A stretch of DNA of 64,000 bases from the NCBI GenBank assembly GCA_009859145.1, contig VRVR01000048.1, forward strand, positions 1 to 64,000, written 5' to 3'. How positions within the stretch are numbered: position 1 is the first letter of the stretch; each line of letters starts with the position of its first letter. Positions 15,575-43,264 of the stretch are shown here, piece by piece. Below the pieces are notes generated by a model. That model ran no database searches. It saw only the letters and a list, made by a program, of their open reading frames with translations, and had not been told where the DNA came from. Both the position numbers and the translations under genes were made by a program. The stretch is from Andalucia godoyi And28 (Eukaryota > Protista > Jakobida).

Positions 15575-16055
15575 CACAAACAACCCCGCCAGTGCTGTCG
15601 CGTCTATTCCTTCTTTCCCCTTGTTGCCCCGTCAGCCAATTGACTGTCGATCTGGATTCCCACAGACACCACCAACATCGATGAGTCCTTTCTCCTCCCC
15701 AAAAATAATAAATAAAAGGTCCCCCCCCCCTCAATCAGACCAAAAGACCAAAGCCATTTTGTTGCGTCAAGTGAACCTTGCCTACACCCTCAGCTCAACT
15801 TTTCCCCATTGAACATCGGCGGCAGCCGTTCTTCGGAGGATCTCTGCCCATTTTCCAAGATTGCGTGTTACTTCGATAAATCGATAGAGTACCAGCCACA
15901 AAAAAAAGGGGGGGTGAACCGTGTGAGAGCGCGGGTGGGGAAGAAACGGAGTGAACAAGAAAGAAAGAAAAAAAGAAGGGGAAAAAAAGGGGGTGAGCGG
16001 AAAGAGTTACGCATCTCGTTTGGTTTGTTCTGATTGCACTAGGAATTTTTCCATC

Positions 16056-18677
16056 ATGTCCGAAACTGAGGATGGGGACGATGGAGGGCGTCAGCGCCGC
16101 CGTGCCCGCGACTTGCTGGGCATGTACTATGGAGTTGGAGAAACGCCGACTCGCCGCGCCGCGCATGATCTCGATATTGATTCTGCACAGTTTGTGGCTG
16201 ACCGATACCTGAAGGATGTACTGGCGAAGAAGGCTGTGAACGGGCTTATTGAGGAGTCGAATACGCGAATCAACGAAATGAAGTCTTTGGATTCTGATCT
16301 GCAGATGTTGGTGTATGAGAATTACAATAAGTTCATTTCTGCCACGGACACCATTAAGACGATGAAGACGAATGTCGAGAACATGGAATCCGAGCTTAAG
16401 CAGCTGGACGAGAACATGAAGGCGATCGACTCGTGTTCAAAGACCATTCACTCCAAGATTGGAGAACGGCGCACGAAAATTGAATCCATGAATTCGGCGT
16501 TTACTCAGCTGAAGCGGTTGCAGTTCCTGCTGGAGCTTCCCGGTCGATTGAAAAAGTGCATCGAAATGAAGGCGTATGCACAGGCCGTTTCTTACTGGGA
16601 GGCTGCTTCAAAGATTTTGACCCAGTATTCTCATCTGGAATCGTTTTCCCGTATCATCAAGGAGTGCAAGGCCCCGTTGGAAGAGCTCAAAACACGGCTG
16701 CGCTCGGCGGTGACATTGATCCCCGTCTCGGAGAAGGTCACAAAAGAAGCTAAACAGGAGCAGCATCAGTTGCTGCAGCAATCGGAGAAGAAAAAGAAGC
16801 GGAAAGACGAGTCTGTGGACAAGGATAGTGGCGCTTCCAAGAATGCCGAGATCGACGAGGACTTGCCTTCGAATCGACTCTCTGAAATGGCGGAGTATGT
16901 TCAGATGCTGCACAAGCTTGGTGACAATGTGAACGCTGTACGAGACATGTTCCTCTTGCACCGGAAGCAATTGCTTACGAAAGCTCTCCAGAACTGGGCT
17001 CCCTTGAATCCCACTGAATCTGTCATGACATGCGTTGCACGCCTCAATGCCAGATTCATGCCCCGTCTTGCCTGGACTTGCCGTGTGTTCATTCCGCTGT
17101 TCTCGGACATCGACGATCGGAAAGAACTGGTTCAATGGGCACGTGACGTTGGTGGCCAGTACCTGTCGGCTATGCGAGAATTGCTGACGAGTGCCGATTG
17201 GTCGTTTGAAAGGCTGTCGAACAATGCGCAGTCGCCCACAGAGTTCAACGATGCCTTGTCTGTGATTGGAGAAGAGGTGCGGAGAATTGCCGCATATGTT
17301 CCCGAATCGCATCTGGAAGAAACTCTGGCCAACACGATTTCCAACATTGTTCGCGGACGCGTTCGCAAGGAGTTCGATTTGATTGCAGCGAAGTTCCGTG
17401 CGTTTATGGACAAGGAAATTAGCTCATCGACTACTCCTGAGTCGGCGTCACTGTTCGACGTGCCAGATGTGTCGTTCGTTCGCGATGACTTGCAGAATGT
17501 TGTCTTGTTTGTGGACCCATTGATCTTCGGCAACGAGTCGTTGAGACCTGGGCACAAAAAGTCTCTTGTCCAGGTTGTTTCTACCATTTTGGTTGATTTT
17601 GTTCCTTCCAATGTCGATGCGTTCATGTCGGTGTTCTTGAAGTCTCGGGCTGGGCTCCCCGAGGTCGTTTTCTCCGCAGTTTCAACAAAGGCATCTCCGA
17701 GTTCTGCAGGCAATGCGTCAGCAATTTCTGCGCTCGGGTCTCTAAGACTTTGTCAGCTGTGCTTGGGTGTTGCTCGCCATGTTGTTCCTGTCATCACCAA
17801 AGTGCTGAAACCGTATGTCGCCGCAATGGATGATTCCGAGGGATTCTCTTCTTTCAGTGCTGAGAAACTGACTGAACAAGTGCTTCGCTTGGCAAGAACG
17901 TTCGTGACCCAGTACGCAGAATCCACGTCACGCTCCATTTCAAATACGTTTTCAGCTTCGATGGATGCCGTGAATTGGTTGCAAGCGAAGGAGCCGAAAG
18001 ACGTTCGTGAGATCACTGTGTCAGTCGTGAAGGAGCTGTCAGCAGCTAATCAACGTCTGAAATGTTCCTTCCCGTCCGCAATTATTCCACAGGGTGTCAA
18101 GAATCTGCATCCTGAACTGACGTCAGAAGATCGAGGCATCGATCGGCACGGCTCCATGTCAACCGGGCTCCACGCATCCTCCACGACGTCGAATATCTCT
18201 CCGAGCTCGTCGTCACATGGCATTTCATCCTCGGGGTCGTTCAATGGAGGCCTTTCGTCGGCTTCCAGTCGTGGAAGGCGATCCGGAACCGTCACGCACC
18301 ATCCGAGCACGGGTGTTGGGATGGAAGTTGACAAGGTCTTCTCAAAAGGACTGGCGCAGTTTTCCGTTACACCCCCGCTTTTCACCCCCGCCTCTGTGAT
18401 GATGTTCATTCTCAAGCGCGTTTTCAAGTCCATTTCGGAAGCCATTCGTCTCCAAACACTCAGTGTAAACGGGAGGACGCAGCTTCTCGTGGATTTGGAG
18501 TACATGCGTTTGCGAATGATGCCTTTGGTTGCCGATGCGGACAGAGCCGATGTGTCAAAGCTTGAAACATTGGTTGACGTGGCATTGCAAATCTGCAAAG
18601 ACCGGTGTGTTTCCACGGAAAAGCCTCCTGCTGACCTTGTGAGGCAGCTTGCCACAACCAGAGCTTCACGAGAATGA
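16056..18677 (+). CDS. VPS51: GARP/EARP complex subunit Vps51
   Basis: DIDSAQF, MKSLDSDLQMLVYENYNKFISATDTIKTMK, LQFLLELP, and C-terminal EAIRLQTLSVNGRTQLLVD. Confidence 0.93.
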   Translation: MSETEDGDDGGRQRRRARDLLGMYYGVGETPTRRAAHDLDIDSAQFVADRYLKDVLAKKAVNGLIEESNTRINEMKSLDSDLQMLVYENYNKFISATDTIKTMKTNVENMESELKQLDENMKAIDSCSKTIHSKIGERRTKIESMNSAFTQLKRLQFLLELPGRLKKCIEMKAYAQAVSYWEAASKILTQYSHLESFSRIIKECKAPLEELKTRLRSAVTLIPVSEKVTKEAKQEQHQLLQQSEKKKKRKDESVDKDSGASKNAEIDEDLPSNRLSEMAEYVQMLHKLGDNVNAVRDMFLLHRKQLLTKALQNWAPLNPTESVMTCVARLNARFMPRLAWTCRVFIPLFSDIDDRKELVQWARDVGGQYLSAMRELLTSADWSFERLSNNAQSPTEFNDALSVIGEEVRRIAAYVPESHLEETLANTISNIVRGRVRKEFDLIAAKFRAFMDKEISSSTTPESASLFDVPDVSFVRDDLQNVVLFVDPLIFGNESLRPGHKKSLVQVVSTILVDFVPSNVDAFMSVFLKSRAGLPEVVFSAVSTKASPSSAGNASAISALGSLRLCQLCLGVARHVVPVITKVLKPYVAAMDDSEGFSSFSAEKLTEQVLRLARTFVTQYAESTSRSISNTFSASMDAVNWLQAKEPKDVREITVSVVKELSAANQRLKCSFPSAIIPQGVKNLHPELTSEDRGIDRHGSMSTGLHASSTTSNISPSSSSHGISSSGSFNGGLSSASSRGRRSGTVTHHPSTGVGMEVDKVFSKGLAQFSVTPPLFTPASVMMFILKRVFKSISEAIRLQTLSVNGRTQLLVDLEYMRLRMMPLVADADRADVSKLETLVDVALQICKDRCVSTEKPPADLVRQLATTRASRE

Positions 18678-18705
18678 TCGCCATAATGCTGAAAAAATAA
18701 TTTTA

Positions 18706-18764
18706 CAACTGACCGACTGGGAGTCAACAGAAAAATTTATTGGAGGCAACGTGGGTATTTTTGG
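18706..18764 (+). repeat. Left terminal inverted repeat
   Basis: Reverse complement of 20978-21036 with 2 mismatches (18738, 18749). Confidence 0.95.
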
Positions 18765-18924
18765 GGCTAACTGCTGCTACAGTCAGCGAAAAATAAAATT
18801 TGGCGCGCACGCCGTTTGCGAGGGAGACACAAAAAACCGAAAACCAAAAAAATCATGTTCTCTCATCTGCCTCTTCAATTTTTGAGAGAATAGTTGATCA
18901 GACATTGAAAACGTACGTCCGGGA

Positions 18925-20865
18925 ATGGAGAAGACCACGGAAACCATGACGCAAGAGAGTCCAGACTCTGAATCGTCGCCCGAAATCAAGAGCAACGCGG
19001 CTCAAAACGCAGAAGCAAATGCAGCCGAACCCGCCCGGGACCTCTCAGAGGATCCCTCCATATTTTCAACTTCAGCGTGGAAAGACGCGTGCCGTGGACC
19101 TTTTGCAGATGCTGAGAAGGAGCTTTTTGAAGAAAGAAGTGCTCCTGAGACTTCTCCAGCCCGCCAACCATTCACCGAGATGCACCACAATGCTGTTCGT
19201 GTACCTTCACTAAAGCGAAGAGGCACGCAGGCTGTGGCAACTGCTTCATCGGATACGAGTGTTCCAAACCAGCTTACAAAACGGATTATGCCAGATGATG
19301 AAAGCGTGATTCCAATCCCCGCCGCGGATGTGAAAGCTATTCCAGAGCTGCAAGGACTGCAACTGAACCAACTCAAGTCGAAGAAACGTCTTTCGCTGGA
19401 TGCTGCAAAGGAAGTTCGGGAAATGAAAAGAGCGCGAAAGGTCCAAGAAAATGATGCAGCTCGGATGCTAACGATGCAGGCAGCAGTGCGAGAGACGTTG
19501 GCAAAGGCAGCCCTTGCAGAAGGAGAGCGAAAGGAAGCTGTTGAAAAAGCGAAGGAGAACCTGGCGCAGACGCCAATCAAGCCTACTGGAGTTGTATCGC
19601 AGGAGGACCGGAAGATCATTTGGAATCAGATTAACTTCATGGGAACTCGTGCGAGCGAAGTTGCGAAGATGCTAGAGAAAAACATCAATACTGTCCGTAG
19701 CGCATGGAGGAGCATGCGCCAGAGACAACTGCAAGGATTGGATCCTGTAGAAATGCCGCTGAGAGGAGGGAACATCCCTGCGTGTCGGAAACCAAGGATG
19801 TTATCCGAAGACCAGCTACTGTGGTCGGCAAGAATGATGGTCTTGGACAACACTCTGCAGTACAAAGATCTTGCAAACAAGGTCGTATCGCAGTTTCCGG
19901 AGTTGCAGGCTGTGAACAAAGACCATTTGGCTCAGAATCTGCAAAAATACTTGCATAACAACCTTGGATTTCGACTGGCAGATTTCCTGACGGTCCCCGT
20001 CTCTCGCAATCTGGAGCGCGCTATTCAAGCTCGAAGCGAGTATGCAGCGAAAATGCTTGGCGACAAAGAAGATCAGTACCAAAGAGCAATTTTCATCGAC
20101 GAGACGCCGTTCAACGTTGATGTCCACCCCGAACAAGGAATCTCCCTTCAAGGGTGCCGTCCATTGCTTGCGATTCACAACATCCAAGCGCCGAGCCTGA
20201 CTTTGATCGCAGCCGTTGACAGAAATTCGTTCGTCTATTATGAATGCTACACAGGCGGCATCAATGGAGCGACATACGCCCAATTTCTGAAGAATCTCTT
20301 CCAGCGTCTCGAACGAACGGGAAGAATCCTCGAGGGTCAAAAACAAATGATCATTCACGACAACGTTCCAATGCATACGGCGAAGCAAACAGTGGTCCCT
20401 TTGCTGCGCGAGTGGGAGTCCAAGATTGAAGTGGAACAGCTGCCACCGTATTCTCCCTTTCTTAATCCTTGCGAAGAAGTATTCGGAATGTGGAAGTTTC
20501 AGTTCTGTCAGATTGTCCGAGAAAAAGTTGCGACACATCCAGCAGGGGTTGCAGCACTGGTTCAACAAGCAGCGAACCAGATCTCGTCCAACAACATCAT
20601 GGCCGCATACAAGCATGCACGTTCCTTCTTTGTGCAGTGTGTGAAAAAGATTCCAGTCAATTCACACCAAATTCTGGATGGAATCCACGAAGGCGACGAA
20701 AAAGAGGAAATTCTCCTTCGGAAGTACAAGGAGTGGGGCATCGATCTGCACTCAGATGTCCGACAAGACCAAGTTGAGGCCGGAACAACAGAGAACAATG
20801 AAGCAGAGTCAGCACGTACTGCAAAGAATGATGCCTGCTTCGTACCCGTGTTCACACAACCATAG
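18925..20865 (+). CDS. DDE transposase (DDE_3-type) with long N-terminal extension
   Basis: HTH-like ASEVAKMLEKNINTVRSAW, then IFIDETPFN, IIHDNVPMH and LPPYSPFLNPCEE; 37 residues between the second D and E. Confidence 0.93.
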   Translation: MEKTTETMTQESPDSESSPEIKSNAAQNAEANAAEPARDLSEDPSIFSTSAWKDACRGPFADAEKELFEERSAPETSPARQPFTEMHHNAVRVPSLKRRGTQAVATASSDTSVPNQLTKRIMPDDESVIPIPAADVKAIPELQGLQLNQLKSKKRLSLDAAKEVREMKRARKVQENDAARMLTMQAAVRETLAKAALAEGERKEAVEKAKENLAQTPIKPTGVVSQEDRKIIWNQINFMGTRASEVAKMLEKNINTVRSAWRSMRQRQLQGLDPVEMPLRGGNIPACRKPRMLSEDQLLWSARMMVLDNTLQYKDLANKVVSQFPELQAVNKDHLAQNLQKYLHNNLGFRLADFLTVPVSRNLERAIQARSEYAAKMLGDKEDQYQRAIFIDETPFNVDVHPEQGISLQGCRPLLAIHNIQAPSLTLIAAVDRNSFVYYECYTGGINGATYAQFLKNLFQRLERTGRILEGQKQMIIHDNVPMHTAKQTVVPLLREWESKIEVEQLPPYSPFLNPCEEVFGMWKFQFCQIVREKVATHPAGVAALVQQAANQISSNNIMAAYKHARSFFVQCVKKIPVNSHQILDGIHEGDEKEEILLRKYKEWGIDLHSDVRQDQVEAGTTENNEAESARTAKNDACFVPVFTQP

Positions 20866-20977
20866 CCATGGAGCACAATTGCAAGACACTAAGGGATAAA
20901 ATGCTTTCGAGAGAAAGCAGACGCGGAACGTTGGGAATTGTTAATCGGTACAGCTGCTCAACAAACCCCTGTCAACT

Positions 20978-21036
20978 CCAAAAATACCCACGCTGCCTCC
21001 AATTAATTTTTCTGTTGACTCCCAGTCGGTCAGTTG
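20978..21036 (-). repeat. Right terminal inverted repeat
   Basis: Inverted match to 18706-18764; followed by TA. Confidence 0.95.
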
Positions 21037-21282
21037 TAAATAATAAAAAAACTGCTGCTACCTTGCCAGCTGTACAACCCCCACCTATATTGAGAGGAAG
21101 TTGACAGTCGTCGAATTCGGCATGGGACATTCCTTCGTGCGTCCACCGAGGATCATTGAGCGAAGTATGAGAATGTTTGTGAAACCAGGTTTTTCCCGTC
21201 TTTACGAAGGAAAACAGAACACAACAAAACACAACAGAACAGAGAAAAGAACAGAGAAAAGAAGGCTTCGACTGGCGCATCC

Positions 21283-24200
21283 ATGACTGTGAGTGCGAAA
21301 GCGGTATCTGTTCTCTCAGAAGATGTGGATGTGATTGTCGATGTTTCTGCAAGAAAGCTGCATTGTGTTGCGCGCCTGACTTGTGCGCCTTCTGGAGCAT
21401 CGCTGCCCAACAGCCTGTCGCTACATGCCCGTCTCTTGGCCATTAAGAGCGTCAAAGTGAATGACACGTACTCCAAGGATTATGTATATACGGGTGAATC
21501 GACAGGACTTTCGCCCGATAGGATCATTGACTTGACTAAGGTGATTCACAAGTACTCGGCCTGCTGGGATCCGTCTCTGGAAATTCCGCTCAAGGGAGTC
21601 TCTGGGCAGTTTGTTATTGAAGTCCAGTATGAACTGAAGCATTTCATTGGAGGAGTGTTCTGGCACCAGTTCGAAGAGGAGTCGCTTGTGTATACAGACG
21701 ATGCACCATTGGCAGTGCGAAATTGGCTCCCGTGCGTGGATGAGCTCGGGTGCCACTCCAAGTTCTCGCTCTCAATATCGGTGCCGGAAGATTGGACTGC
21801 TTGCGCATCGGGTACCCTTGCCCAGATTCTCCCTGCTGCTGGAAATTGCAGGAAGTGGGTGTTCACTCCTACCCCAAGAGAAGTGCATGCTTCCCGCTTC
21901 GGATTTTGTGTGGGCACGCTTCCGTCCCACATTTCCAAGACCATCACAGGAACTTCGGACAGAGACTCGGAGAAGGTCTTTGTCAATATGTTCGGAACAA
22001 GCCCCATCACGGATGTGGCCGCCAAACTGGACTTTGCTGCAACTGCTGCATCGTCATTTTTCTCATTTGTTCCTTTGTTTCTTGGAACAACCAGCACGCG
22101 TGTTCTTGGCGGCAATTCGCTGTCCATTGTGTTTACAGATTCCATTCCTGGCTCATTTCTGTCGTTTGCAGGACTTCTTCTTGTGCATCCACGATTCTTG
22201 CCGGCACATCTGGAGTCCCTCGATCGGGTGAAAGCCGCGCATCAGGTTATGTTTTCCGGAATGGCGAGATGCATCCTTCGCACGCATTTCAGTGCATCCC
22301 ATTTCCATTCATTGTGGCTGGAAGAGTTTGTGTCGTACATGATCTCGGATGCGCTCCTTATTCATCTTTATGGTTTCAACTGGTTTGCGTGGATGATATC
22401 CGACGAAGAACAGAAGTTCTATGGGTACACCCATCCTCATGACTTCCTTCTGGCTCGCTGGCAAACGTTCTTGTTTGATGGCCCCATTGTGGAATCTGAC
22501 TTTTTCCCTTCTACACGCTCGTTGTCTGTTATGGCCTTCTCTGCCGCGTCTCGGTCAAGTCCGTTGTATTCTCAGAAGTTTACCCATCCGTCGGAATTGC
22601 TGACCCCTCGTCGCTCTCTTCTCTGCCGTCTCGTAGCCTACTACTTTCGAAGGACCCTGTTTTCCAGAACGTCTTCAGATGCGGTGTATCAACGAACACT
22701 GCAGGTCTTTTTTCACGGCGCTGTTAAAGCGGTCAATGCTGCGCATACCACCATTCCGTGGGATCGACTCCTGCATACCGATCGCTTTTTTCAGACGGTA
22801 GTTAAGGTCGGAAAGATGGAGTCTTCCTCTTTTGACGAGGATTTGATGAGTCGATTCACTACTCGATTCGTCCGCAACATTCCGGTGTTTCCTGTGGTTC
22901 GTGCAGCGTATGTCTTCGATGCAAAAGCCAGAAAACTGCGAGTGGCGATGAACGTGTCCTCCAACGAGCAGCTTATTGCGGATGGACCCCTAAGCATTGT
23001 TCTTCGCGAGCGTACGGTCATTGCGTCACATGCTACTGAAATCCGCGGAGAACGGTGCACCGCGGAAATGGATGTGAAAAGCAAGACTCCGACCCATGAT
23101 ATTTCCATGCCAGATCACCCGTTGCTCAAGGACCAGATTGCGTTGTGGAACGCCTCAACATCCCATCCACGATTTCCGGTGTACTACGTGCGACTGGATC
23201 CACTGCATGAACTTGGATATCGATGCATTGTCCGCCAGTCCTTGCGATCGCATTTGTTGGAGCTCGTGGATGCTGATGCTGATATTTTGACATTGAAAGA
23301 TGGTATTGATGGTGTTGTTCGCTTGCTGCTCACAGCGGAAGGCAAAGGAGACGGGCATTTCGTTACGGAGCTGGAAACCCGAGATGTCATCAAGACGCAT
23401 GAGTTTGGACTGTTGCAGGTTTTGCAACGCATCGTTGCGATGAAGGACCAGTATCCTGCCGTCCTTCGATGCCATGCTATTCGCGGGTTGGCACAGCTTG
23501 CTCCGGTCTATCCCAAAGCTCTGGAGTCCTTGCTAGGTCTATTTTCATCGGCGGTCTCAGCGCAATCTGATAACATGGCTATCGAGGACAAGTGGTCTTC
23601 AGACATGATTCTCGTACAGTGTGCATTCTCGTTGTCGAAAGTGGGCGGAAAAGAACCATTCGCTCGCCTGTGGGAACTCGTGCAACGAGTCTGGAACAAA
23701 GGGGATATAGCGGAGGATGTTCGTGCAAACTTGATGGTTGCTTTGTTTCTGTGCCATGTGGAAGAACAGGCGTTCGTGAGAGTGAAACTCGGCTTATGCC
23801 AGAAAATTCTGGAAGGTGCATCGTCCCCGGGGAAGAGTCGTGTGCATGCCGTTTTTGTCCAATGTGTTTTGCAACACCTTCCCTTTTTGCTTTCCTATTC
23901 AAATGATCGGTCATTTCTCCCAGAGTTTCTGGAGCGTGTTGTTTGTCCCTTTGCTCTCGTGGGTCACGACGCGGATACTCGTATTTCCGCGTGCTCCTGT
24001 CTTCTTTCCTTGACTACCGATGAGCTCACCACCGTGCAGTTCATCTTGGATGGCATTGATGTGGTGTACTCCACGCCCTACATTCGAGTTCTATTTATGC
24101 TGATCCTCGCCAACTACGACTCCTTTACCATTCCGTTTTTGGAAACTGTTCGTTTGAAGAGTGAGTTCTCTTATTTTAGTCAGCAAGTTTTCCAGCGGTT

Positions 24201-26031
24201 CATTTCTTCTCCAGTTGCAGAAGTGGATTCCCGTTTCTTCTTTGCTTCCGCTCGCTTCTATTCCCACTTGTTCGGTTTCCATCTACCGCCCTCGGTTTCA
24301 GGAGTTGCGGTTCCGAACTGGGTCGAAAAGGTTGCGGCGTTTCCAAAAGATTTGGTTGTCGTTCAGCCGCTTTCTCAGCCAGAACGGGCAGTTTCCGTCC
24401 CGTTTAAAAGAGAGAGGGATCCGAATTTCGTAGAGGAAAAGGAGAAAAAGATTGCCAAGCGACCTTCTATTTCGACGTATGCTCGCACGCCGGCGGCCGA
24501 TGGAGCTTCGTCTGTGGTGCCGTTTACACCAGCTGTTCCCAGCACTCCAGGTGCAGCTCGAGTAGGGACTTATGTCCCCAATCCGTACTCGCTTCGCTTT
24601 GTGCTCAAAATCGGACGTCACTGGGGAACCATGTTTTTGGATCCTAAGAATCCTCTGTCGAAGATTGTGGAATCCTCGATCCCCTTTGGGCTGGATGCAA
24701 TTTGGTTTGGAAAGTCCCTACTCCGTGTGCCGTTTCACATGCATCCACGGCTGCCAGACTGTTACACAACGCTTGGTAATTCAAATATGGTGACTCATCT
24801 CACGCAAGGCCAGGTGGCCTTCTGGCCTGCGAAGGAAGGATTTGCGGAAATTTTGATTCACGTTTCTGACAGCTCGCAATCGAGATACCAGCTTTTGGAA
24901 GAATGTTATCTTATTGGCACGATGGCGATGGGCTTTGATTACACCATTCCGGAAACGCCCGAAATCAGCGGGTGTTTGCCGGTACCGTGGCCAGGGATCT
25001 ATTCTAATGGCAGCCTCAACAAGTTTGCGAAAACCGTGGCAAGAGAGGCAACTTCCTCCGGCCTGTTGTTGGTTTCCATATGTCGATTTTCAGAGGTCCG
25101 CTTGTTTGTGAGAGGATTGGAATTCGGCATCGAAGTTGTACCGTCGGTGAAGGGCACGATCGCGTATGAAAACATCTGTGTCAACACGTTGGTGAGTCCT
25201 GGAGTTCTTTATCCTTGGACGAATCACGATTGTCACCTGGCGTATTTTCCGCTGCTACTGAATACGCCGCATGTTGAGAAAGCAAAAAACCAGGAACTGG
25301 TGAGGACCATTCTCACTCCTGGCGAAGTTGCATTGTGGATCCCAGCTGCACCGCCGGATGCGCCACTTGTTCCTCGCTCGGTCTCTCTCTGTGTTGGCTA
25401 TGGACGCTCCGTCTTTGACGATCATCTGTGTAGACTCAAGGCGCACGAGGACTGTGAGCTGTTTGGACGGTGCTATTCTCTGCGAGGTCTCGGGTCTGCG
25501 GTAGAGGAGCTAAAAACAACGCATGATCTGGACTTGTGCATGGTAGCTGCCCCTCCAAACTTGTCTTTTTTGCGAATTTCTGTCCCGGATTCGGATTTGG
25601 TGGTGGATGTGGAGGTGTACACGAACTTTCAAACGGGTCGAGATTTCATCGATTTTGTGCGAAAGAATTCTCAGCTTTCTCTGTCCTTGTCTCGTTTCCA
25701 GGAGACGCTCGTGTTTTGTCCGTTGCAAAACGCGACCGATGACGATTTTGAGGAGGTTTTTGAGGAATTCCCGCGGTCTTATCTCCGGGAAGGCGATATC
25801 GCCCTGTGCTGCTCAAGAGAGACACTCATCTGGAATCTTTATATTGGCTACAATGCGCTGCATCACCGCATTGACATCGATGAAAGTGAAGTGTGTCGGG
25901 TCTTTGGAAAGATGCTTTTGTGGTCTACAGAGAAGAAGGACAAGTTGAAAATGGCCCCGAATGGCACTCGAATCGTCATTGACGTGATGGACGTTATGCG
26001 CGGCTGGCCCGATGCGACACCATCAGTTTAA
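21283..26031 (+). CDS. TAF2: TFIID subunit 2 (inactive M1-aminopeptidase fold) with C-terminal triple cyclophilin-like repeats
   Basis: VRNWLPCVD...W..CASG; HEXXH absent at the expected site (followed by LWLEEFVSYM); YVRLDPLHE...RQ; HEAT-like region; three C-terminal repeats. Confidence 0.78.
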   Translation: MTVSAKAVSVLSEDVDVIVDVSARKLHCVARLTCAPSGASLPNSLSLHARLLAIKSVKVNDTYSKDYVYTGESTGLSPDRIIDLTKVIHKYSACWDPSLEIPLKGVSGQFVIEVQYELKHFIGGVFWHQFEEESLVYTDDAPLAVRNWLPCVDELGCHSKFSLSISVPEDWTACASGTLAQILPAAGNCRKWVFTPTPREVHASRFGFCVGTLPSHISKTITGTSDRDSEKVFVNMFGTSPITDVAAKLDFAATAASSFFSFVPLFLGTTSTRVLGGNSLSIVFTDSIPGSFLSFAGLLLVHPRFLPAHLESLDRVKAAHQVMFSGMARCILRTHFSASHFHSLWLEEFVSYMISDALLIHLYGFNWFAWMISDEEQKFYGYTHPHDFLLARWQTFLFDGPIVESDFFPSTRSLSVMAFSAASRSSPLYSQKFTHPSELLTPRRSLLCRLVAYYFRRTLFSRTSSDAVYQRTLQVFFHGAVKAVNAAHTTIPWDRLLHTDRFFQTVVKVGKMESSSFDEDLMSRFTTRFVRNIPVFPVVRAAYVFDAKARKLRVAMNVSSNEQLIADGPLSIVLRERTVIASHATEIRGERCTAEMDVKSKTPTHDISMPDHPLLKDQIALWNASTSHPRFPVYYVRLDPLHELGYRCIVRQSLRSHLLELVDADADILTLKDGIDGVVRLLLTAEGKGDGHFVTELETRDVIKTHEFGLLQVLQRIVAMKDQYPAVLRCHAIRGLAQLAPVYPKALESLLGLFSSAVSAQSDNMAIEDKWSSDMILVQCAFSLSKVGGKEPFARLWELVQRVWNKGDIAEDVRANLMVALFLCHVEEQAFVRVKLGLCQKILEGASSPGKSRVHAVFVQCVLQHLPFLLSYSNDRSFLPEFLERVVCPFALVGHDADTRISACSCLLSLTTDELTTVQFILDGIDVVYSTPYIRVLFMLILANYDSFTIPFLETVRLKSEFSYFSQQVFQRFISSPVAEVDSRFFFASARFYSHLFGFHLPPSVSGVAVPNWVEKVAAFPKDLVVVQPLSQPERAVSVPFKRERDPNFVEEKEKKIAKRPSISTYARTPAADGASSVVPFTPAVPSTPGAARVGTYVPNPYSLRFVLKIGRHWGTMFLDPKNPLSKIVESSIPFGLDAIWFGKSLLRVPFHMHPRLPDCYTTLGNSNMVTHLTQGQVAFWPAKEGFAEILIHVSDSSQSRYQLLEECYLIGTMAMGFDYTIPETPEISGCLPVPWPGIYSNGSLNKFAKTVAREATSSGLLLVSICRFSEVRLFVRGLEFGIEVVPSVKGTIAYENICVNTLVSPGVLYPWTNHDCHLAYFPLLLNTPHVEKAKNQELVRTILTPGEVALWIPAAPPDAPLVPRSVSLCVGYGRSVFDDHLCRLKAHEDCELFGRCYSLRGLGSAVEELKTTHDLDLCMVAAPPNLSFLRISVPDSDLVVDVEVYTNFQTGRDFIDFVRKNSQLSLSLSRFQETLVFCPLQNATDDDFEEVFEEFPRSYLREGDIALCCSRETLIWNLYIGYNALHHRIDIDESEVCRVFGKMLLWSTEKKDKLKMAPNGTRIVIDVMDVMRGWPDATPSV

Positions 26032-36078: not shown

Positions 36079-36563
36079 GTCTGTATGCGTTCTGCCGTTC
36101 AATTAATATTTTTTTTAATCCCCCCTTTTTTTCTTTTTCTTTTTCCTCCTCCTTCTTCTTTTTCTGTTTCTCAAGAAGAAAATATGAAGCAAACCGAAGA
36201 CGGATTTAAAACGAGCAACGAAAAAGAAAAGGAAAAGAAGAAAAAAGAAGAGAAATCGATGTTTTGGAGAAGAACTGGATGGGGAATCGGTGGATACGCT
36301 GCTGCGCAATCGCAACACTTGGGGAAATGATCAATCTCCAACGAACGATTTCATCAAACCCAGGGAAACCTTGCAGGTCTCCTCCGACATATCCAGCTTG
36401 TAAAGTACCATAACAAGCAGTAGAACTGGGGCAGATACAACTCGAAACACAGCATTGAAATATCAAGTCCCATCCTTCGGACAATGCGAAGTACACACCA
36501 TACGGATTTTCCGGAAGCATCGATAAACGACGATCGCAGCCATTTTTCCCCCTTTGTTTTTCT

Positions 36564-36612
36564 GTTTCGTTTCGTTTCGTTTCGTTTCGTTTCGTTTCGT
36601 TTCGTTTCGTTT
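36564..36612 (+). repeat. (GTTTC)n pentamer microsatellite
   Basis: About 9-10 tandem units, downstream of the MscS-like gene. Confidence 0.95.
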
Positions 36613-36795
36613 GGCTTTGTTTCTTCTCCTTTCTCATTTCACGACGTCCTCGTTTACTCGTCAAACATAATGCGTACATACATATACACACAAATATTAT
36701 AATAATAAAAACGGCAAAAACCATCCCTGTGAACATATCTGCTAAAGATACGTTGTATCCGTGTCCCCCAGGATGTCGTAACCCACCGTCAATGA

Positions 36796-43053: not shown

Positions 43054-43112
43054 GCGAGTTGCGGGTTACGGGTTACGGGTTACGGGTTACGGGTTACGAG
43101 TTACGAGTTGCG
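43054..43112 (+). repeat. (ACGGGTT)n telomere-like heptamer array, about 8 units with variants
   Basis: GCGAGTT GCGGGTT ACGGGTT x4 ACGAGTT x2 GCGG. Confidence 0.92.
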
Positions 43113-43264
43113 GCAACGAACCTACTGATCATACGACAGCGCAGTTTCTTATTTATTCTGGAGCAGAAGGGGAAAGGACGTGGCCTTTTTTTTGGTTCGG
43201 CTATCAATTTAGATTTTAGAATCCGCTTTTTTTTTTTGTGGTTTTATTTTTGTTGTTGGACGGA

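Follow-up and report, generated by a model that had tools for sequence, protein, structure and literature searches.

The first 64 kb of contig VRVR01000048.1 of the jakobid Andalucia godoyi, referred to here as the window, contain a 2,331-bp element that occupies positions 18706-21036, as read from the window sequence. With a probability of roughly 80%, this element is an autonomous member of the IS630/Tc1/mariner (ITm) group, a class II transposon of the cut-and-paste type, whose long DD37E transposase (37 residues separate the second catalytic D from the catalytic E) is from an unnamed lineage of such proteins among the IS630-like eukaryotic elements, and whose family is apparently mobile in A. 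godoyi. The element is structurally complete, with a TA target-site duplication, terminal inverted repeats (TIRs) of 59 bp and one uninterrupted transposase gene. What most distinguishes it is the double length of its transposase, with an N-terminal extension and a C-terminal HxGDE motif; a preliminary description of this DNA, made from the sequence alone, had given the length of the open reading frame (ORF) without remark. The ORF was placed by an exact-protein look-up on VRVR01000048.1 in assembly GCA_009859145.1, and the coordinates of the window are those of the record. VRVR01 is the nuclear genome of A. godoyi, which is about 20 Mb in size and almost intron-free, and in which intergenic spacers measure 44-691 nt (PMC7050145). 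The parts of the element, with the amino acids (aa) of the transposase and the basis of each assignment, are the following.

18704-18705, no strand: left TA of the target-site duplication, read from the sequence, with its partner at 21037-21038.
18706-18764, plus strand: left TIR of 59 bp, which starts with CAACTGACCGACTGGGAG and is matched by the right end, in reverse complement, at 57 of 59 positions.
18720-18728 (GGAGTCAAC) and 18742-18750 (GGAGGCAAC), plus strand: two 9-nt direct repeats in the left TIR, 22 nt apart, located by script.
18765-18924, plus strand: internal 5' non-coding region, presumed from its position to hold the transposase promoter and the 5' untranslated region (UTR).
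18925-20865, plus strand: uninterrupted transposase ORF of 1,941 nt and 646 aa, from the ORF list and from Pfam, NCBIfam and fold matches.
18925-19569, plus strand: N-terminal extension, aa 1-215, predicted from an AlphaFold2 (AF2) model to comprise a disordered stretch (aa 1-114), the basic motif VPSLKRRxTQAVA and a long helix (aa 153-205).
19600-19965, plus strand: predicted DNA-binding region of the bipartite helix-turn-helix (HTH) type, with HTH1 at aa 226-269, the basic linker PLRGGNIPACRKPRML and HTH2 at aa 295-347, from the AF2 helices and an IS630 model that aligns from aa 240.
20089-20649, plus strand: DDE catalytic domain of the RNase H-like type, aa 389-575, alpha/beta in the AF2 model, from Pfam, alignments and AF2.
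20674-20700, plus strand: C-terminal motif ILDGIHEGDE, aa 584-592 plus flank, 71 residues past E517, from the family alignment.
20866-20977, plus strand: internal 3' non-coding region, assigned by position.
20978-21036, minus strand: right TIR of 59 bp, ending in CAGTTG, from the comparison of both ends.
21037-21038, no strand: right TA of the target-site duplication, read from the sequence.

At the left boundary, the host sequence AATAATTT and the TA are followed by the first element bases CAACTGACC (in a longer reading after the TA, CAACTGACCGAC), and at the right boundary the last element bases GGTCAGTTG (in a longer reading before the TA, GTCGGTCAGTTG) are followed by the TA and AATAATAA. 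The direct duplication at the flanks is limited to these 2 nt. The two mismatches between the 59-bp TIRs lie at TIR positions 33 and 44, and similarity falls off beyond position 59. A repeat search returned arms of 70 nt at 93%, which exceed the TIRs because the flanking TTTA/TAAA is itself palindromic. In the 64-kb window, the initial 32 nt of the TIR are present at both ends of the element and nowhere else, and none of 100 shuffles contained them. The reconstructed empty site, AAAAAATAATTT-TA-AATAATAAAAAAA, is AT-rich and palindromic over 3 nt on either side of the TA. The preliminary description had already proposed the boundaries TA/CAACTG...CAGTTG/TA, the 59-bp TIRs with two mismatches and the AT-rich, near-palindromic empty site, and all of these are present as proposed. 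Use of the two mismatches as a measure of age was rejected, since the ends of active elements need not match and the mismatches therefore give no insertion date. The paired GGAG(T/G)CAAC repeats within the TIR are candidate transposase-binding sites. The element thus has the TA duplication that characterizes the ITm group as well as TIRs that surround a single transposase gene.

The gene between these ends encodes a protein whose core is that of a standard ITm transposase, with two HTH motifs followed by a DD37E catalytic domain. In GenBank and EukProt, the gene model starts at M8 (position 18946) and yields a protein of 639 aa. The catalytic residues are D392 (codon GAC, 20098-20100), D479 (GAC, 20359-20361) and E517 (GAA, 20473-20475), with 86 residues between the first two and 37 between the last two, which makes the protein a DD37E transposase. 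Both the uninterrupted 646-aa ORF and the three catalytic residues at this spacing agree with what was first described. DDE_3 is the sole Pfam match (E 5e-20, aa 389-524), and relatives of the protein match the Pfam families HTH_23, HTH_28, HTH_32 and HTH_SB. Positions 12-282 of the 299 positions of the NCBIfam IS630 model NF033545 align to aa 240-533, a region that includes both the HTH and the DDE parts, with 76.7 bits at a cut-off of 100. A sequence search of the PDB retrieved the catalytic domain of Sleeping Beauty (SB100X; E 1.4e-4) and also Mos1, and in these alignments D479 coincides with the HDNxPxH motif and E517 with the NPxE motif of both proteins. An AF2 model was built from a family alignment of 16 sequences. 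In this model, aa 226-269 and aa 295-347 each form a three-helix bundle and are joined by the basic linker. A Foldseek comparison of the model with the PDB retrieved full-length chains of the Mos1 transpososome (E 6.5e-12, up to 396 columns), and the target-normalised TM-scores to catalytic domains are 0.73-0.80, with 0.75 for Sleeping Beauty and 0.80 for Metnase/SETMAR, and with Mos1 also in this range. The bipartite HTH region and the RNase H-like DDE/D domain that are typical of ITm transposases are thus found by Pfam, the IS630 model, the AF2 model and the Mos1 fold. Antisense ORFs within the transposase gene (e.g., 19816-20616, 266 aa) were taken as mechanical by-products.

The transposase is about twice as long as the usual ~340 aa, with around 215 extra residues at the N-terminus and around 70 at the C-terminus. 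The N-terminal extension has no counterpart in typical ITm transposases of ~340 aa (PMC5630946, PMC10379824). Within the VPSLKRRxTQAVA motif, S95, L96, R98, Q102, V104 and A105 do not vary among the four closest family proteins, which also share basic clusters and the long helix at their N-termini. In the C-terminal motif, H588, G590 and D591 are invariant across 16 diverse relatives. The general form of this motif, (I/L)(L/I)DxxHxGD(E/D), was found in 27 of 153 matches, namely in the top-scoring ones that form the DD37E clade and its sister group (described below), and was absent in all 126 matches outside these two groups, most of which are DD34E. Its distance from the catalytic E is 71-73 residues in 24 of the 27 proteins; P0026 and P0046 have 79 residues there, and the fragment P0058 has 44. 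The long helix could serve in multimerisation and the HxGDE motif could add contacts to a metal, to DNA or to a partner, which are guesses from the model. A sister-group transposase of the DD39E type (P0021, 636 aa, locus L007 in the ENA metagenome ERZ23486799) carries an N-terminal SAP domain (Pfam, E 8e-7), and N-terminal domain accretion therefore varies within the lineage.

The relatives of the transposase were sought exhaustively among 1.84 billion representative proteins. This search returned 1,357 matches at E<=1e-3, of which only 16 reached E<=1e-30. The complete close relatives all keep the D-86/87/88-D-37-E spacing, and the transposases of this clade are long (550-730 aa). The next shell consists of long proteins in which the second D and the E are separated by 36, 38 or 39 residues, and the bulk of the remaining matches (26-30% identical) are proteins of ~340 aa of the DD34E type, with 82 residues between the first two catalytic residues, which cluster with a sequence of Anopheles gambiae in the tree described below. 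The nearest protein from outside Andalucia is 49% identical to that of the window, and the paralogues of A. godoyi reach 74-82%. All non-Andalucia relatives come from metagenomes or Sequence Read Archive assemblies, on contigs of 1.2-5 kb. Apart from the element of the window, the DD37E lineage is known only from the A. godoyi paralogues and environmental contigs, as far as the sequences searched indicate. Cluster look-ups for 20 relatives returned only the labels 'hypothetical protein' and 'transposase' and no family names, and no relatives of the transposase were found on viral contigs. A scan of metagenome contigs yielded only distant relatives (<=31% identity, mostly DD34E) and no new close members, and among the matches listed by a word-index profile search with the 16-sequence family alignment there were only five proteins, all already known. 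One of the metagenome contigs, JADMIO010809284.1 (76 kb), carries at least three distant DDE_3-type relatives (L010, L015 and L028, 27-29% identical) within ~30 kb and looks like a transposon-rich eukaryotic region.

Several of the environmental relatives are preserved together with their ends. The locus L004 (positions 609-4035 of contig Ga0485819_003505 of the JGI metagenome 3300043542) is a 3.4-kb member of the family with a transposase (P0011) that is 33% identical to the protein of the window, and lies on a 5-kb contig that includes flanks on both sides. Its ends read GGA-TA/CTGGCCATCG...CGATGGCCAG/TA-TCC, with the terminal letters TA/CTGGCC...GGCCAG/TA, a palindromic target and TIRs of ~130 bp at 99%, in which two direct repeats of the form CCCAGGG(G/T)GTTT(T)CTG occur. 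The 2,639-bp contig L003 (1-2639), with a transposase that is 44% identical, consists of TA, element and TA, and its inverted repeat is perfect over 69 nt with the TA included. An assembler would yield such a contig from a multicopy element, as the copies have everything in common up to the duplicated TA. The contig L002 (1-2603) also has inverted repeats at both ends, and the pattern of these two contigs suggests multicopy, near-identical elements in an environmental eukaryote. The TIR of the window element aligns without gaps with that of L003 over ~70 nt, and paired short direct repeats are present in the TIRs of L002, L003, L004 and L005. The right end of L005 is lost at the end of its contig, and no TIRs were seen around the transposase genes of L006 (sister group, 10-kb contig) and L007.

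The position of the element among named families was assessed with block-trimmed Cobalt and Tc1/mariner alignments (supplement of PMC4007536) and with the text of TRT, L18 and Mosquito sequences obtained by optical character recognition (OCR) from the supplement of PMC10379824. In a neighbour-joining tree of 182 columns, bootstrapped 100 times, the DD37E clade held together as a monophyletic group in 94 replicates, with the long DD36/38/39E proteins as its sister group. The clade is nested among IS630-like eukaryotic sequences, far from the long branch of Tc1 and mariner. The protein of the window by itself also obtains its top scores against Cobalt-type references. Scored with a hidden Markov model (HMM) of the clade, Cobalt1 reaches 44 bits, the A. 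gambiae sequence, which is probably Gambol, reportedly the element of Coy and Tu (2005), 43 bits, and other IS630-like eukaryotic sequences 33-40 bits; the OCR-derived references score 28 bits for TRT, -2 to 15 for Mosquito and -2 to 10 for L18, and Tc1 and mariner remain below 7 bits.

Three named families share the DD37E spacing: TRT, with 338 aa and a position inside Tc1; L18, with ~355 aa and near maT; and Mosquito, with up to 370 aa and near Visitor (PMC10379824, PMC5630946). Like the window element they have 37 residues between the second D and the E, a TA duplication, TIRs and a single ORF; unlike it, their transposases measure ~336-370 aa and their elements mostly 1.3-1.8 kb. For DD37E/TRT the spacing agrees, but the window protein has 646 aa against ~338, and the zebrafish TRT, read from OCR text, obtains 28 bits although it is full-length, whereas trimmed IS630-like references obtain 33-44. 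DD37E/L18 was ruled out by its -2 to 10 bits with the clade HMM, obtained with OCR text, and by its expected ~355 aa, and DD37E/Mosquito (also known as MS or ITmD37E) by its -2 to 15 bits, likewise with OCR text, by 646 aa against at most 370 and by a jakobid instead of an invertebrate host. The spacing in common with these three families is best read as convergence. The Tc1 family in the strict sense (DD34E) was ruled out as well, by the spacing of 37, the scores below 7 bits of the Tc1 references and their separate long branch. Mos1 mariner (DD34D) and Sleeping Beauty (DD34E) resemble the window protein in fold, domain order and the alignment of the catalytic D and E, and serve as a mechanistic model; they differ in being only 18-22% identical, in their length of ~340 aa and in having neither N- nor C-terminal additions. 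Bacterial IS630, for which NF033545 is an equivalog model, was ruled out by the score below the cut-off. Although that model covers the HTH and DDE parts nearly end to end and IS630 also targets TA, the bacterial references branch outside all eukaryotic IS630-like sequences, and the window protein is eukaryotic and has long low-complexity extensions.

The closest resemblance is to IS630-like lineages of eukaryotes. The TA-targeting, IS630-like elements Cobalt1-3 are known from Capsaspora owczarzaki (Suga, 2013; Carr and Suga, 2014; PMC4007536). They resemble the window element in the TA duplication, the TIRs and the core motifs FxDExxFN, xxDNxxxHK and LPPYSxFLNPxE, and Cobalt provides the best-scoring named reference (44 bits); unlike it, Cobalt, compared as block-trimmed sequences, groups in the tree with Acanthamoeba and Perkinsus sequences, apart from the DD37E clade. 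For the paralogues of A. godoyi, EukProt names as best match Capsaspora CAOG_09202, which may be a Cobalt transposase. IS630-like eukaryotic lineages outside Tc1/mariner also include Gambol (DD34E), Hiker (DD35E) and the fungal Dici (DD34E, 473-477 aa) (PMC13469147, PMC7386202). These resemble the window element in the TA duplication, in a PAIRED-like HTH plus DDE architecture, in matches to NF033545 and in their position outside Tc1/mariner proper, and the references nearest to the DD37E clade are the assemblage of Cobalt and the probable Gambol; the clade is nevertheless separate (94 of 100 bootstraps) and has a spacing of 37, in a comparison that for Gambol, Hiker and Dici as families relies on their descriptions. 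By these descriptions they differ from the window element, which is DD37E with 86 residues between the first two catalytic residues, 646 aa and a C-terminal HxGDE; in addition, Dici carries three coding sequences and the window element one. On these sequence comparisons, it is concluded that the element is an ITm element that neighbours Cobalt, Gambol, Hiker and Dici, differs from them in spacing and architecture, and lies outside Tc1, mariner, TRT, L18 and Mosquito. No name for the clade was found, and neither the A. godoyi genome paper nor the transposon literature searched describes the element. The assignment to the Tc1/mariner superfamily given in the preliminary description therefore stands for the ITm group as a whole but not for Tc1/mariner in the narrow sense, the nearest elements being Cobalt and Gambol-like ones. 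The phylogeny of the DDE domain against ITm clades that it had called for was approached with the neighbour-joining tree, which speaks against kinship with Tc1/mariner proper. The suggestion of a possibly undescribed lineage gains support from the lack of a match to TRT, L18 and Mosquito and of a published description in the sources searched.

That the family has moved within its host appears from the protein models of A. godoyi. The EukProt proteome contains six further relatives of the transposase, none of which is in the GenBank annotation, and all of them are known as EukProt protein models and not as DNA. According to the genome paper, subtelomeric scaffolds rich in 'transposon/viral-like sequences' were left out (PMC7050145), and the lack of the paralogues in the GenBank annotation fits this omission. 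ANDGO_05503 and ANDGO_03643 (637 aa) share 74% identity with the window protein, and one of the 637 residues distinguishes the two. Another three are truncated models with 76-82% identity to the protein of the window: ANDGO_06714 and ANDGO_02494 (both 255 aa) and ANDGO_05806 (191 aa). The internal-deletion junction SEVA/DFLTVPVS, which joins the equivalents of aa 243 and 353, is shared by ANDGO_06714 and ANDGO_05806; ANDGO_02494 is the partner of ANDGO_06714 in a 90% cluster, and its junction is assigned from this clustering. A deletion derivative that is not autonomous and was copied several times probably underlies these three proteins. The last paralogue, ANDGO_07417 (409 aa, 41% identical), has an H in place of the first catalytic D and 33 residues between the second D and the E, and is probably a fourth subfamily's inactive remnant. 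Because near-identical full-length copies, a repeated deletion derivative and a dead copy constitute the usual structure of a family that has been active in its host, this one has apparently transposed in the A. godoyi lineage, judging from these sequences. The evidence for activity is indirect and concerns the family; for the copy in the window, the youth and activity suggested in the preliminary description are possibilities. Identity between the window protein and its 74%-identical paralogue falls from 86% (DDE region) over 78% (HTH region) to 53% (disordered N-terminus), a gradient that fits selection for transposase function along both lineages.

By analogy with the established Tc1/mariner pathway, from which all of the following steps are taken, the transposase would enter the nucleus via its basic motifs and its HTH domains would bind the paired GGAG(T/G)CAAC repeats of each TIR, so that both ends of the element are synapsed. 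D392, D479 and E517 with Mg2+ would then cut both strands at the element ends, and the 3'-OH ends would be joined to a staggered cut at a TA, the repair of which would duplicate the TA.

The element is inserted between two host genes, whose coordinates are given here.

15951-18677, plus strand: upstream host gene, VPS51/exocyst-like (Pfam VPS51_Exo84_N, E 5.5e-20).
21283-26031, plus strand: downstream host gene, TAF2-like and M1-peptidase-N-like, from weak Pfam matches below curated cut-offs.

From the stop codon of the VPS51-like gene it is 26 nt to the left TA and 28 nt to the element's first base, and from the right TA it is 244 nt to the start codon of the TAF2-like gene. Without the element, the spacer between both genes measures ~272 bp, which is within the range of 44-691 nt published for A. 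godoyi (PMC7050145). From this position, the insertion is probably in or beside the 3' UTR of the VPS51-like gene and displaces the promoter region of the downstream gene, and the element may provide or perturb the 3' end of the former and the promoter of the latter. The other neighbours are ordinary housekeeping genes, which encode an origin recognition complex subunit and NUP210-like, RCC1, leucine-rich repeat and ankyrin proteins. The codon usage of the transposase correlates with that of pooled host genes at r 0.58, and ten host genes tested gave values of 0.70-0.91; its GC content at third codon positions (0.516) is the lowest among the genes compared. Short tandem repeats occur in the host flank at 21204-21263, just upstream of the TAF2-like ORF (AACAGAACAC x2.9 and AGAACAGAGAAA x2.3). 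Microsatellite-like arrays at 36559-36623 (TTTCG x12.8) and 43058-43113 (GTTACGG x8) are intergenic or at ORF edges and are unrelated to the element.

Several points weigh against reading the element as an autonomous transposon of a distinct and mobile family. No further copies, solo TIRs or MITEs (miniature inverted-repeat transposable elements) derived from it were found within the 64-kb window, and no second copy of its subfamily (>=90% amino acid identity) is among the proteins on record, and recent movement of this particular copy is therefore without direct support. The near-identical paralogue pairs could stem from subtelomeric segmental duplication and not from transposition. The tree was built by a distance method alone and includes trimmed and OCR-damaged references, and its deep order is tentative. 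In the AF2 model, the mean predicted local distance difference test score is 64.9; the core mostly reaches 70-94 with low-confidence loops at aa 350-358 and aa 399-420, and the extensions and the HxGDE region are of low confidence.

Among the alternatives, the one that survives best is that the element is intact but immobile, the last copy of a subfamily that no longer transposes owing to changes in its TIRs or promoter, to silencing or to subtle substitutions, and one that has so far escaped a disabling mutation; this is possible but doubtful. Besides the lack of a second protein on record that would fall in the same subfamily (>=90% identity), this view draws on the differences between the TIRs at 2 of 59 positions, on the lack of a MITE or solo end in the window and on the paralogue with a dead catalytic residue, which indicates that decay occurs in the family. 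However, the 1,941-nt ORF has neither stop nor frameshift, and keeps the catalytic triad and all residues that are invariant in the clade, which speaks against neutral decay over a long time; active elements normally have imperfect TIRs too, and other subfamilies do show near-identical copies.

A recent horizontal arrival from another microbial eukaryote, which would explain the single copy of the subfamily and is compatible with an autonomous element of a mobile family, is unlikely. Horizontal transfer is a known trait of ITm elements (PMC5630946, PMC8533490), and the copy is single, intact and less host-like in its codon usage than the host genes, with scattered environmental contigs as the source of its closest non-Andalucia relatives. 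Yet no donor is in view, and the nearest outside protein is 49% identical against 74-82% for the paralogues; since these are far closer than any outside protein, the subfamilies appear to have diversified within the A. godoyi lineage.

That the transposase was domesticated, i.e., kept for a host function such as DNA binding or regulation that would explain the extra N- and C-terminal regions, is very improbable: this would agree with a single copy in a gene-dense housekeeping region, with its annotation as an ordinary protein-coding gene and with the long conserved non-catalytic extensions, but both TIRs and the TA duplication are near-perfect and the triad is intact, L003 and L004, which appear to be multicopy, combine the same extensions with TA duplications and TIRs that are long and perfect, several paralogues in various states (diverged, deleted, inactivated) exist in the genome, and the codon usage correlation falls below that of all ten host genes. 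Domesticated copies normally lose their TIRs and TA duplication. Domestication, which the preliminary description had named as the finding that would overturn its reading, is therefore unlikely because the TIRs and the target-site duplication are kept and because the family includes degraded and deleted copies.

Read as an autonomous transposon of a long DD37E lineage, the element may belong to something broader. Tentatively, and with less confidence than attaches to the element itself, the DD37E clade and its DD36/38/39E sister group could form a separate family-level ITm lineage of microbial eukaryotes, characterized by HxGD(E/D), set nearly constantly far from the catalytic E, and by long N-terminal extensions, in which the additions work in transposition and of which the A. 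godoyi copy is active. If so, the additions might, for instance, supply further contacts to metal or DNA, let the protein oligomerise via the long helix or recruit a factor of the host. The element points to a clade of ITm transposases of double length that share a conserved motif at the C-terminus, and this motif lends itself to direct testing. An active copy would provide the first mobile-element tool for a jakobid, a group for which, to our knowledge, no transposon tool exists and in which no DNA transposon was found described in the literature.

In all, the element is a modest addition to the diversity of transposons, a new architectural variant and not a new type of element, and leaves the understanding of cut-and-paste transposition unchanged. 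The DD37E spacing has arisen again outside the three named families, and spacing alone is thus a poor family marker. A. godoyi matters for early eukaryote evolution and has a very compact genome, and the presence of an intact, autonomous-looking element in a spacer of ~270 bp means that compact genomes still tolerate mobile DNA.

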